64,000 nt of DNA from Oculina patagonica (lineage: Eukaryota). Below are positions 12,420 to 35,726 of the stretch, in pieces. Under the pieces are notes generated by a model. It searched no databases, was not told where the DNA came from, and was given only the letters and a program-made list of their open reading frames with translations. The stretch lies in the NCBI RefSeq assembly GCF_052425735.1, contig NC_135766.1, positions 9,362,001-9,426,000 on the forward strand, read 5' to 3'. A program made the position numbers and the translations under genes. Each line of letters starts with the position of its first letter. The stretch's first letter is position 1.

Positions 12420-12730
12420 TCAGCCAAGATAGAATACCTCCACCTCATCAGGTGTGAAGCTGTAAGTCCCAGCCAGGATTGTTCTACTGCTTTGTACTCC
12501 ACTTGGAACAGAGTAGGAGTTGCCAAAGCTTGTGTATGAATTAGTGTTACTGTTTGCATTGTTTGCAATGTAGATGTCATGCCCTCCACCAAATGTTGGA
12601 CCATAACCTGAGTTCCTGTAAATTACATTTTGTGACTTTTTCACCATACTCTTGAACGGTCCAAGACCTTCTTTGTTACGAAGCGAAAATAAGAACGCAT
12701 GGTGGGATGAACCATAACCACTACTGGTAT
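12420..12730 (-). CDS. Exon 10: TLDc domain, C-terminal half (copy A)
   Basis: AFLFSL...[13 protein letters not shown]...[15 protein letters not shown], then a stop; AATAAA-like downstream region is shared with copy B. Confidence 0.92.
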
Positions 12731-33700: not shown

Positions 33701-35726
33701 TTACACATAAAGGTATACTCTAGTGCTTATCTCCAGCAATTGTTCATTAGATGACAAAATAATTGGCAACGAAAAACCTAAACATAAACTGTTGAAAGAT
33801 AACTCTGTGTATAGTGTAAGGTCAAGAACTCGTCCAGAGATGCAATACTATTGATCATTCAATGTTAAAGAAACCGAGTTAATTAAGCTGTGTGTGGGTC
33901 AATTGACCCGCGATATGAAGAAGTATCAGTAGCTAGACATTAATCTTACCTTCCACGCAAACTATCTTATCGTCACTTTTTTCCACTGTTGCGTTCTATT
34001 GATTGTAAAAAAATATTTTGATTAAGTTGGTTGTAAGCTACCTCTAGCTCTTGCAGAACAGGCTTTGTGTGTAAGAGGACCTTTATCTAGGTGGTGGGAA
34101 TAAATGTGTTACTGGCATCCAAGTCGTAGTACATAATATTAACAAAATAAAGAAAAAATAAATAAATAAAACCAAGGCAAAACATTCAGTGAACAGTAAA
34201 CATTCAGTGAAGAGTTAGTAAAAGTGTAATCCTTCGTGCTTAAGTACTACAATGCTTTACTTCTTATTTATCAAGGTGGTTACGCTGATTGATCAGGTCT
34301 CGTGTGTCATACAAAGAAGAAAAAACAGATAACTTGACAAGATAAGACAAAATCTGTGCTTGGGGTTAAATAAGCCAAGCACATATAAGCACAACAGGAT
34401 GTTATAAGCTCAACAGGATGTTATAAGAACAACAGGATTTTAAAGACAGATTACAATATAAATAAATAGCTTCAACCTGATTGGACATGCTGACTAGTGC
34501 CGTTGCAGGTTAAGTAGATGAGGATATATCGAGACTACTGAGACACATTTTCACACCAGTTATTCGCAGTAAGGGACGTTATGAGGACAACGACATGGAA
34601 TATCATTCGTTATTAAAAACTAGCTATGGTATATTGCAATTCCTGCGTTTTTGACTGGTTAACAGGCAATGGTATACGAACTAATATACCATTGACCAAA
34701 ATTATGGTAGCCGATACGTGTCAACGAAAGCAGCTTGGGAGCTAAAACAATTATTTCACTTTACTCGACCGTTATAGCCAACTCATATCCAACGTGCGCT
34801 CGTGGAATAATTGTTAAAATTTTCTCTTGATTTCCATCGCATTCTCAACAATTTAATAAATATCAGCTGTGTTGGCACAATACATAGCTAATACATTTAT
34901 ATTATAATTATTACTTCCTGCAATTTAGTTCTTCCCGAATAATGTAACATCGCACCAAACAACGACATAATTACAAGCGAACTGACAGGTCACATACTTC
35001 GATCCCCTTCATATCCTAATTCTGATTGAAGAAAGGAAGAGACCATACATTTACCTCTAATCTAGTGAAAAGGCCGATTCCAATGTTATTTTCTTCAATA
35101 TTAAAGCTTTAATTTTGATTCAAAGTTACAATGAGATAGTGCATTTCAGCTTGAAGCGCTCTGATCAATTTTGATTCCTTGCTAGCTATGCATACTTTCT
35201 TCACCTTCGATAAGCTTGACTAATTTCTGATAAACCTTCCTTAGAGTTTTATTTTAATTGCAGAAAAAATCTACTCAGAGCAATATTTAGAAACCGGAAA
35301 GGAAGTTAAATAATATTGGCATTAAAAGCAAACCCTTTCAGACTTTTTAGAGCCAACTCAGTATTTGAAACACGGAAGTAATCAAACATAATGAAATAAG
35401 CAACTTACATTTCGATGCCCATTCCAGTTTAAACAGACGCTGCTGCATTTGCGGCACATGGATTGACTATCGGCAGCTCTTTTGACGACATTCTTCTTCA
35501 TTTGGGATCCACGCGAACTTGCAGTTGCTGGTGTCACAATCTCGCGATTGTCATTCCCATATGGATAACTGTTTACAACCAGTGAATCCCGTTCAACTGC
35601 TGTTAGACGCGAGTCTAATCGATGTAAAGAATAACAAGTGAACCCAAGAGAACTCAGTGTCAAAATTAAATTGAATGAAAGTCCAAAGAGGAGAACATTG
35701 GAGCTCTTTTTGCTTTTGCTCTCCAT
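12420..35726 (-). CDS. Type II transmembrane collagen-3xIg-2xSushi-TLDc protein (about 763 aa, 10 exons; +1 frameshift in exon 3 as assembled)
   Basis: Exons 35726-35409, 33995-33950, 33397-33178, 30959-30693, 29726-29454, 29359-29084, 27741-27571, 27283-27107, 26460-26227, 12730-12420. All introns are GT-AG with compatible phases (0, then all phase 1). Confidence 0.88.
13300..13618. mobile_element. Non-autonomous interspersed repeat insertion
   Basis: Absent at the paralogous site (about 62195-62205); contains the internal hairpin ATAGTCAAC..GTTGACTAT. Confidence 0.55.
15521..15597. repeat. 77-bp near-perfect palindrome
   Basis: 38-bp arms TGCACTGGAACATTTTCAGATACAGTATCCCGTTTGAA, 1-nt loop, 1 mismatch. 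Confidence 0.9.
16457..16978. mobile_element. MITE with TGCGGT subterminal repeats
   Basis: TIRs GAGGGGGGCGTAAGGG / CCCTTACGTCCCACTC; flanked by a GAAATA direct repeat. Confidence 0.7.
17842..18340. mobile_element. TA-flanked MITE (Tc1/mariner/pogo-like)
   Basis: TA-CCGTACCCAAATTC ... GAATTTGGGTACGG-TA. Confidence 0.75.
18345..18502. mobile_element. Hairpin MITE
   Basis: TACCTAATCGTACCTTTTTGGTACGCTTCGGCGGCA ... TGCCGCTGAAGCGTACCAAAAGGTACGATTAGGTA. Confidence 0.8.
18796..19083 (+). repeat. Direct repeat (about 290 bp), copy 1; copy 2 at 25564-25862
   Basis: CATATTGATTTATT..ATCTGTAATCTCTGTTCGCG..CCTAGCCAAAACCGTACGTCGTTTCTGG..TTACTTAGAAACACTTTGC is shared. Confidence 0.9.
19813..20301 (+). 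pseudogene. Intronless acidic/helical ORF remnant of unknown function, possibly from a Polinton/Maverick-like element
   Basis: [26 protein letters not shown]...[27 protein letters not shown]...[21 protein letters not shown]; one in-frame stop at about 19930; AATAAA follows at about 20354. Confidence 0.45.
20488..23559 (+). mobile_element. Sola3-like DNA transposon, internally deleted, with TIRs of about 1 kb
   Basis: TTAA TSD (20484-87, 23560-63); GAG...CTC termini; highly similar inverted arms at about 20541-21541 and 22468-23493 (mirror ORFs 21106-21330 minus and 22705-22929 plus); the spacer holds a transposase N-terminal remnant. Confidence 0.85.
22020..22416 (+). pseudogene. Sola3-like transposase N-terminal remnant
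   Basis: [89 protein letters not shown]; same Cys/His motif as 41918-42121. Confidence 0.65.
24458..25325. mobile_element. Old foldback/MITE-like element with diverged inverted arms of about 200 bp
   Basis: About 24458-24660 is the reverse complement of about 25120-25325 (e.g. CTATAGACTCGAGTAGACCC / GGGTCTACTCGAGTCTATAG). Confidence 0.75.
25564..25862 (+). repeat. Direct repeat (about 290 bp), copy 2
   Basis: See 18796-19083. Confidence 0.9.
26227..26460 (-). CDS. Exon 9: TLDc domain, N-terminal half
   Basis: [46 protein letters not shown]. Confidence 0.92.
27107..27283 (-). CDS. Exon 8: Sushi/CCP domain 2
   Basis: [10 protein letters not shown]...[32 protein letters not shown]. Confidence 0.92.
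27571..27741 (-). CDS. Exon 7: Sushi/CCP domain 1 (absent from the ORF track)
   Basis: Manual translation: [57 protein letters not shown](C). Confidence 0.9.
28036..28490 (-). mobile_element. 3' end of a CRE-like (restriction-like endonuclease) non-LTR retrotransposon
   Basis: [27 protein letters not shown]-terminal motif (28488-28410), AT-rich 3' UTR, (TAT)n tail at about 28036-28058. Confidence 0.65.
28491..28975 (-). mobile_element. 3' end of an L2/CR1-group LINE
   Basis: CPEYL..TR...[25 protein letters not shown]...FKK ORF2 C-terminus; (TAT)n tail at 28491-28538. Confidence 0.7.
29084..29359 (-). CDS. Exon 6: Ig domain 3
   Basis: [21 protein letters not shown]...[11 protein letters not shown]. 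Confidence 0.93.
29454..29726 (-). CDS. Exon 5: Ig I-set domain 2
   Basis: [17 protein letters not shown]...[23 protein letters not shown]. Confidence 0.93.
30084..30369. other. Assembly gap (N run) in intron 4
   Basis: Run of N bases. Confidence 1.
30693..30959 (-). CDS. Exon 4: Ig I-set domain 1
   Basis: [21 protein letters not shown]...[23 protein letters not shown]. Confidence 0.93.
33178..33397 (-). CDS. Exon 3: collagen triple-helix repeat (about 19 Gly-X-Y)
   Basis: [60 protein letters not shown]; one extra A in an A7 run at about 33309-33315. Confidence 0.9.
33950..33995 (-). CDS. Exon 2: short linker ([16 protein letters not shown])
   Basis: caatAG acceptor and GTAAG donor; phase 0 to 1 bridges exons 1 and 3; N-glycosylation sequon NAT. 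Confidence 0.75.
35409..35726 (-). CDS. Exon 1: basic cytoplasmic N-terminus, signal-anchor TM, dibasic site, CxxC stalk
   Basis: [45 protein letters not shown]...[14 protein letters not shown]; donor GTAAGT at 35408. Confidence 0.85.

Follow-up and report, generated by a model that had tools for sequence, protein, structure and literature searches.

A TLDc domain at the predicted outer end of a putative type II membrane collagen in Oculina patagonica, and its tandem hexacoral family

CniFL proteins carry one transmembrane domain, a collagen stretch, three Ig domains and a fibrinogen domain, their copy number varies, and they have been proposed to act as pattern-recognition receptors (van der Burg et al. 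2016, PMC5094078). The gene described here has a scaffold of this kind but ends in a TLDc domain; it lies in a stretch of 64,000 nucleotides from the coral Oculina patagonica (assembly GCF_052425735.1, contig NC_135766.1, positions 9,362,001-9,426,000, forward strand), which we refer to as the window and whose own numbering is used throughout. At a more general level, a related design is familiar from the colmedins (gliomedin), the membrane collagens XIII, XVII, XXIII and XXV, and ectodysplasin, all of which are type II proteins, have a coiled coil next to the membrane and a site for convertase cleavage, trimerise through collagen and end in a distal effector domain. For TLDc domains, the only roles known to us are cytosolic: V-ATPase regulation and protection from oxidative stress. 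The analysis below leads us to regard the locus as a probable member of a large, tandemly arranged and hexacoral-specific family of type II membrane collagens in which the TLDc domain is an interchangeable extracellular binding head, and thereby as a candidate recognition or adhesion molecule.

The gene comprises ten exons on the minus strand, running from 35726 to 12420, and encodes, from N- to C-terminus, a basic tail, a signal anchor, a KR site, a CxxCxxxC cluster, a collagen stretch, three Ig domains, two Sushi domains and a TLDc domain. Its features, and two further landmarks of the window (an assembly gap and part of a second family copy), are as follows.

35409-35726, minus strand: exon 1, with the ATG, the basic tail, a 24-residue signal anchor, a short heptad-like segment, a variable stalk, VVKR followed by A, and CRKCSSVC (CxxCxxxC); donor GTAAGT, phase 0.
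33950-33995, minus strand: microexon of 46 nucleotides, encoding 15 residues and leading from phase 0 to phase 1, with an N-glycosylation sequon and a Cys directly N-terminal of the collagen.
33178-33397, minus strand: collagen exon of 220 nucleotides, with about 10 Gly-X-Y triplets in one frame and about 10 more in the next; Pfam Collagen matches in both frames.
33309-33315, minus strand: A7 homopolymer (T7 on the plus strand), the site of a +1 frame break according to the alignment of homologous loci.
33222-33224, minus strand: premature TAA in the spliced frame as assembled, giving a product of 179 residues.
30693-30959, minus strand: Ig1 exon (I-set), Pfam 3.6e-21; RNA joint from 30693 to 29726 in four runs; RNA contigs end at its acceptor.
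30084-30369, no strand: assembly gap (N) inside the intron between Ig1 and Ig2.
29454-29726, minus strand: Ig2 exon (I-set/Ig_3), Pfam match; RNA joints on both sides.
29084-29359, minus strand: Ig3 exon (I-set/Ig_3), Pfam match; RNA joints from 29454 to 29359 and from 29084 to 27741.
27571-27741, minus strand: Sushi 1 exon, Pfam 8.8e-9; RNA joints; last Cys codon split by the intron.
27107-27283, minus strand: Sushi 2 exon, Pfam 8.3e-12; bridged to TLD1 by the RNA contig X3 record 16.
26227-26472, minus strand: TLD1, a linker and the first half of the TLDc domain (Pfam profile positions 14-75), Pfam 5.1e-12; an RNA contig begins the exon at 26472.
12731-26226, minus strand: intron within the TLDc domain, 13,496 nucleotides, repeat-filled, with GT..AG ends.
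12420-12730, minus strand: TLD2, the second half of the TLDc domain (profile positions 71-169) and the stop codon, Pfam 1.8e-10 (match 12730-12423); X1 RNA overhang matching in 23 of 26 bases.
60857-61173, minus strand: last (TLDc) exon of an upstream tandem paralog, the remainder of which lies beyond the window.

GT..AG ends are found at all nine introns, and every exon from Ig1 to TLD1 has phase 1 at both ends and a length divisible by three. A preliminary description of this stretch had proposed ten phase-compatible exons encoding three Ig, two Sushi and a C-terminal TLDc domain; the ten exons are real, as are the domains and their order, with a Pfam match on each of the Ig, Sushi and TLDc exons, but the frame of the collagen exon breaks as assembled. 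The two TLDc exons reach 46.5 and 41.4 bits for Pfam PF07534 (cut-off 24.5), and because their profile positions abut, they constitute the two halves of one TLDc domain; no other TLD-like open reading frame (ORF) was found inside the 13.5-kilobase intron between them. At the other end of the gene, the phase 0 of exon 1 and the phase 1 of the collagen exon are reconciled by the conserved microexon, which stands out as a conserved block bounded by AG and GT when the intron is aligned with that of a homologous locus (L002), is recovered by BLAST in three such loci (L003 at 96%, L004 at 85% and L002 at 79%) and aligns to the motif 'VVCMRG' of the orthologs. An alternative phase-1 donor in exon 1 (A/GTTGCT) was ruled out, since paralogs keep GTAAGT, GTAAGA or GTAGGT at the phase-0 site.

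The splicing was followed in Logan contigs of four RNA runs, aligned to positions 26150-32100. Coverage by RNA falls mainly on the predicted exons, with a depth near zero for the majority of intron bins, and canonical joints (CT..AC on the plus strand) connect 30693 to 29726 (in all four runs), 29454 to 29359, 29084 to 27741 and 27571 to 27283. As the first of these skips 30692-29727 in every run, the assembly gap is intronic and leaves the coding sequence untouched. X3 record 16, a contig of 1099 nucleotides with 99.4% identity over 792 nucleotides, runs through Ig3, Sushi 1, Sushi 2 and TLD1 and sets the TLD1 acceptor at 26472; the earlier proposal that Sushi 2 is joined to TLD1 (27107 to 26460) thus holds for the junction as such, but the acceptor lies 12 nucleotides upstream of 26460. 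RNA contigs also extend beyond the TLD1 donor at 26227. The X1 overhang matches the exon at 12730, starting exactly at the acceptor, and has no equally good match in the window; together with the continuous Pfam halves and the continuous proteins of relatives, it supports the junction from 26227 to 12730 that had been proposed.

The same contigs contain several variants. One run has an in-frame isoform, joined from 30693 to 27741, that skips the Ig2 and Ig3 exons. The codon preceding the split Cys at the junction of Sushi 1 and Sushi 2 (27572-27574) is TCA (Ser) in three of the four runs versus AAA (Lys) in the window, which reflects either a divergent allele or a close paralog. RNA contigs of three samples join TLD1 to distinct TLD2 starts (DTSSGWSSS, GSKCYDSSSNA and GSSCCYCSSS), and the start in the window differs from these; the latter two, from X2 and X3, are homologous to the window TLD2 start, lack a counterpart in the window, and may be divergent alleles, close paralogs or chimeric contigs. 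The loop at the start of TLD2 may, in other words, be hypervariable between alleles or paralogs, or else the contigs may be chimeric. Within the intron between collagen and Ig1, positions 31125-32100 reach an RNA depth of hundreds to thousands, versus 20-60 on the exons, and match no Rfam family or tRNA; a multi-copy expressed repeat is the most likely source.

These data bear directly on the possibility, raised already in the preliminary description, that the gene model is an artefact and that the TLDc exons and the membrane-collagen exons are separate genes. The repeat-filled 13.5-kilobase intron does split the TLDc domain, and the range compared with RNA (26150-32100) begins downstream of the collagen exon. 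RNA nevertheless splices the TLDc exons to the Sushi exons, with one contig bridging Ig3, both Sushi exons and TLD1; moreover, the same continuous layout is found in transcript-derived and annotated proteins of five genera, and the exon phases match throughout, so that we hold separate genes to be exceedingly improbable. The large intron also contains, at 21106-21330 and 22705-22929, near-identical 74-residue ORFs on opposite strands, which look like an inverted repeat duplication.

That the locus belongs to a family is evident from its relatives. A search with the TLD2 exon against 1.84 billion representatives gave 3004 matches, including a protein (P0053) with exactly the architecture of the window gene, and with P0053 as query full-length Collagen+Ig+Sushi+TLD relatives of 716-756 residues are found in Oculina patagonica, Porites lobata, Montipora capricornis and Exaiptasia diaphana. 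These relatives can be aligned with the window product over its whole length, at 36-39% identity, and have in common with it the N-terminal anchor, the R-x-K-R or K-R site, the CxxC motif, 'VC(M/V)(R/E)G' and the Cys before the helix. The layout that had been surmised to mark an anthozoan family is conserved, at full length, across Hexacorallia (stony corals and sea anemones). Related proteins are annotated as "uncharacterized" or "hemicentin-1", and the expectation that automated names would be hemicentin-like was correct for a Collagen+Ig+TLD protein of Nematostella vectensis (P0162, 'hemicentin-1 isoform X2') and for P0187 of Pocillopora verrucosa ('hemicentin-1'). The latter, 1448 residues long, combines three collagen stretches with five Ig and two TLDc domains and has the appearance of two tandem genes of the family merged by automated annotation.

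The size of the family follows from exon 1, for which a protein search yields clusters of homologous ORFs, at least 186 in number and 58-92% identical, of which single contigs hold several; all diverge directly after the GTAAGT donor, and as these are without exception genomic ORFs that read into the intron, they inform on family size and on the donor, and not on the junction between exon 1 and collagen. The window itself holds part of a second copy, i.e. the TLDc last exon at 61173-60857. Paralogous exons of GST_C_6 type (FAXC/metaxin-like) are present on the plus strand at 9098-9559, 54396-54869 and 58105-58509, and the first and last of these are each located 2.3-2.9 kilobases from a TLDc last exon on the opposite strand, which suggests that TLDc and GST_C_6 form a tandemly duplicated two-gene unit.

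Whether this particular copy is intact depends on its collagen exon. The count of about 19 Gly-X-Y triplets given in the preliminary description corresponds to the two halves of about 10 triplets, both recognised by Pfam, but 20 uninterrupted triplets are obtained only when one A is ignored. The exon was compared with those of three homologous loci, namely L003 and L004 in GCA_044670265.1 and L002 in a coral assembly from ENA. At the A-run (33315-33309) the window has A7, versus A6 or AAGAAA in these loci, with no compensating change, and the exon measures 220 nucleotides in the window versus 219 in L003 and L004. Because the one extra A is not compensated, the spliced frame leaves the Gly-X-Y repeat after about 10 triplets and stops at 33224-33222; with one A fewer, the gene encodes 20 uninterrupted triplets and a protein of 767 residues. 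The extra A may be either an assembly error or a pseudogene mutation. A way around the break, in which exon 1 is spliced to a TAG acceptor at 33388, the microexon is skipped and an unbroken ORF of 749 residues results from the assembly as it stands, was ruled out as the main model, since the three homologs keep both the microexon and the acceptor at 33397; it would also put one half of an otherwise perfect collagen repeat in the wrong frame and lose the Cys before the helix. This form may occur as a minor isoform.

It is conceivable, although we lean against it, that the window copy is a transcribed pseudogene, with a real extra A, a protein truncated after the first collagen half, and function confined to the paralogs of a tandem family under birth-and-death evolution. 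The difference from all three homologous loci and the stop at 33224 point in this direction, and decaying copies do exist in the family: the closest homologous locus (L003:2431-2647 in GCA_044670265.1, 93-96% identical in exons) carries an in-frame TAA of its own in the collagen exon as well as an altered donor, and may be such a copy. Three words were sampled from the 81 nucleotides around the A-run, and each public run that held any of them had one of the three, so that no other run contains more than one; with three words, however, this test does not separate an error from a private allele. Against a pseudogene speak the fact that homopolymer length is a classic assembly error, the eight downstream exons, whose frames are open and whose splice sites and domain cysteines are all preserved, and the existence of spliced RNA that is virtually identical (99%) to the window.

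Returning to the reading of the locus as a membrane collagen, the basic N-tail, signal anchor, VVKR site and CxxC stalk that had been recognised before are all present in exon 1. Its hydrophobic segment of 24 residues (Kyte-Doolittle maximum of 1.91 over 19 residues) is long enough for a signal anchor and carries a net positive charge on its N side, and it is the most conserved part of the exon (92% across 120 paralogs). The dibasic K-R followed by A is conserved family-wide, the sister subfamily having R-x-K-R. The ectodomain contains 20 Cys in domain-wise pairs, with exactly two in the TLDc domain, and seven N-x-S/T sequons, and its modules other than TLDc are of obligately extracellular types. 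By these features, the short basic cytosolic tail and the signal anchor would direct co-translational type II insertion, which would leave the rest of the chain outside the cell. The juxtamembrane heptad-like coil, the Cys cluster, the Cys before the collagen and the approximately 20 Gly-X-Y triplets could then nucleate and staple a trimer, and a proprotein convertase could release the ectodomain at the conserved KR-then-A site between membrane and collagen. The three I-set Ig and two Sushi domains would form a spacer and the three C-terminal TLDc domains a distal binding head. By analogy with proteins of this design, the product is probably a trimeric, sheddable surface molecule.

The identity of the head as a TLDc domain extends to its fold. 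We used as a stand-in a transcript-derived Sushi-TLDc fragment (P0010) that is 63% identical to the window head and has an AlphaFold model with a mean predicted local distance difference test score of 93.9. In a Foldseek search with this model the top 15 PDB matches are all TLDc domains, including those of OXR2, NCOA7, Skywalker, mEAK7 and Oxr1, with template-modelling scores of 0.65-0.77 and a probability of 1.0 at 15-17% identity; the nearest solved relative by sequence is NCOA7 (E = 2e-4). Matches among AlphaFold-DB clusters indicate that proteins of widely varied organisms have this TLDc subtype behind a BTB domain as well. Across an alignment of 47 TLDc domains, the motif 'LCYRA' has Cys in coral and anemone heads versus Leu in BTB-linked and protist domains, whereas a second Cys ('FHSxC') is invariant. 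The two cysteines of the window head are exactly this pair, which fits an added disulfide. The Cys-bearing ('LCYRA') domains are all on one side of the tree, where two changes are needed and a single origin is possible. Since a lumenal or extracellular TLDc domain cannot reach the cytosolic V1 part, the known V-ATPase mechanism would be inapplicable here.

An extracellular TLDc domain might still have kept the second of its known roles, in that the head would be redox-protective or enzymatic and would guard the cell surface or symbiont interface from reactive oxygen instead of binding a ligand. TLDc proteins are reported to confer oxidative-stress resistance (PMC4742741). The oxidation-resistance phenotypes of OXR1 and NCOA7 are in line with such a role. 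Corals carry a high oxidative load from their symbionts. However, we know of no catalytic activity established for TLDc, the current structures, judged by their PDB titles, explain function via V-ATPase binding, the window type is only 15-17% identical to the characterised domains, and trimeric display on a stalk is a design of binding heads; we consider a redox role very doubtful.

Both the scaffold and the head recur in other combinations. On the same type II anchor-collagen-three Ig (and Sushi) stalk, the head is replaced by D8C in Montipora and Acropora (P0163, P0164) and by a COLFI-like domain in Acropora muricata (P0167). TLDc heads, conversely, are found on SUEL-EGF-F5/8C and PAN-EGF-fn2 scaffolds and behind a signal peptide with coiled coil. 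The tree is consistent in this respect: the window head clusters (100/98 support) with the heads of P0003 (signal peptide plus coiled coil), P0036 (F5/8C-EGF) and P0125 (collagen plus two Ig), and does not group with those of the sister membrane-collagen subfamily. P0029 of Oculina patagonica has a fibronectin type II (fn2) domain inside its TLDc domain (residues ~283-322), at the loop that matches the phase-1 intron between TLD1 and TLD2 of the window, an apparent case of exon shuffling into the head.

Two further readings concern what such a molecule does. The protein could be a structural component of the matrix or of cell adhesion, in the mesoglea or in epithelial attachment, whose collagen, Ig and Sushi domains do the work, with TLDc as a passive cap or assembly domain. 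Collagen, Ig and Sushi are indeed typical matrix and adhesion modules, as the automated hemicentin names reflect, and the sister head COLFI is the assembly domain of fibrillar collagens. We nonetheless find this reading unlikely: a family that is large, tandem and apparently fast-evolving fits recognition molecules better than core matrix, as do RNA overhangs that differ in the first loop of the head; the TLDc head is reused on lectin-rich secreted scaffolds, and the collagen is short (~20 triplets). At the opposite end stands a diversified innate-recognition system, with hundreds of tandem genes that have a near-invariant anchor and stalk and variable TLDc surface loops, in which TLDc would be an unrecognised extracellular ligand-binding fold that discriminates microbes or symbionts. 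It is suggested by the loop at the intron-split junction, for which RNA of different colonies gives four different sequences, and by the fn2 domain inserted there in one relative, and we regard so specific a system as quite unlikely.

The less specific reading put forward at the outset, that of a family of membrane collagens with TLDc as extracellular binding head, has to be weighed against several observations. The assembled sequence puts the collagen exon out of frame and ends the ORF at 179 residues, so that this copy may make no full-length protein. The RNA for the junction from TLD1 to TLD2 is a single 26-base overhang with three mismatches, and the range compared with RNA takes in the junctions from Ig1 onward. 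The RNA contigs come from other individuals, about half of them are only 95-99% identical, and some may represent close paralogs. A classical furin site has Arg at P4, which the dibasic site of the window's subfamily does not. As for topology, trimerisation, shedding and ligand binding by a putative extracellular TLDc head, the case for each is by extension from what is known of signal anchors, membrane collagens and defence collagens.

The remainder of the window contains mobile elements, i.e. retrotransposon pol/gag sequences (DUF1759, aspartyl protease, RVT_1) at 1-3539 and the remnant of a Harbinger-type DDE_Tnp_4 transposase at 6580-7872, both on the minus strand. Rfam and tRNA scans of the whole window gave no matches.

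The literature on extracellular TLDc domains (coral, cnidarian or collagen-linked) yielded no functional description of this family, in agreement with the preliminary description; the 'TLD' of a nematocyst proteome was considered and set aside because it refers to tolloid. Gene models of the family are known, in that they are present in public databases under uninformative names; what is new is the membrane-collagen TLDc family as such and its conservation beyond corals. Sea anemones and reef-building corals alike bear the TLDc fold on the far tip of a collagen stalk anchored in the membrane, which suggests a second role for this fold, outside the cell. The finding extends the CniFL-type scaffold into a modular set whose heads number at least four (fibrinogen/COLFI-like, D8C, TLDc), provides coral immunology and symbiosis research with concrete, testable candidate surface recognition molecules, and means that cnidarian 'hemicentin-1' annotations hide a membrane-collagen TLDc family.

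With regard to known systems, the TLDc fold (judged by the P0010 model) is common to the window family and OXR1, NCOA7, TBC1D24/Skywalker, mEAK7 and yeast Oxr1/Rtc5. Those proteins are cytosolic and bind the V1 part of the V-ATPase, whereas the TLDc domain of the window follows Ig and Sushi domains behind a signal anchor and has the extra Cys that its BTB-linked and protist relatives lack. The closest heads, 60-64% identical to that of the window, in one clade with it and likewise C-terminal, belong to the secreted coral proteins P0003 (Oculina), P0202 (SUEL-EGF-F5/8C-EGF-TLDc) and P0029 (PAN-EGF-fn2-TLDc), but their scaffolds are without the membrane-collagen-Ig stalk. Hemicentin has a VWA domain, a long Ig array, EGF domains and a fibulin-type module, and perlecan has SEA, LDLa and laminin domains; the window gene has only three Ig domains and none of the others, and the 'hemicentin' annotation reflects Ig similarity only.

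The preliminary description had called the gene colmedin-like. Its design does resemble that of the colmedins (gliomedin), membrane collagens and ectodysplasin in the succession of type II anchor, collagen and effector, a likeness of layout for which no sequence relationship is claimed. Those proteins, however, have no Ig and Sushi spacer, and the window gene has neither an olfactomedin nor a TNF head: its exons give no Pfam match to olfactomedin (OLF), the domain that defines colmedins such as gliomedin and UNC-122. Collectins, ficolins and C1q resemble the window layout in that cysteines cluster at the N-terminus and a short stalk of collagen leads to a trimeric recognition head at the C-terminus, but they differ from it in being soluble, with a cleaved signal peptide, in forming higher oligomers and in bearing C-type lectin, fibrinogen or gC1q heads.

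The closest known family is CniFL, and this likeness had escaped the preliminary description, as had the frame break, the large size of the tandem family, the 46-nucleotide microexon and the acceptor at 26472. Instead of a fibrinogen head the window gene has a TLDc domain, preceded by two inserted Sushi domains, and CniFL is conceptually tied to the lectin-complement pathway via its fibrinogen head, a link that TLDc does not have. As the window exons have no Pfam Fibrinogen_C match and the C-terminus consists of two Sushi domains and TLDc, the gene represents a CniFL-type scaffold and not a CniFL in the strict sense. What it shares with CniFL, which is also treated in the Aiptasia genome paper, is the N-terminal transmembrane domain, the collagen stretch, the three Ig domains, the C-terminal globular head, the restriction to hexacorals and the variation in copy number.

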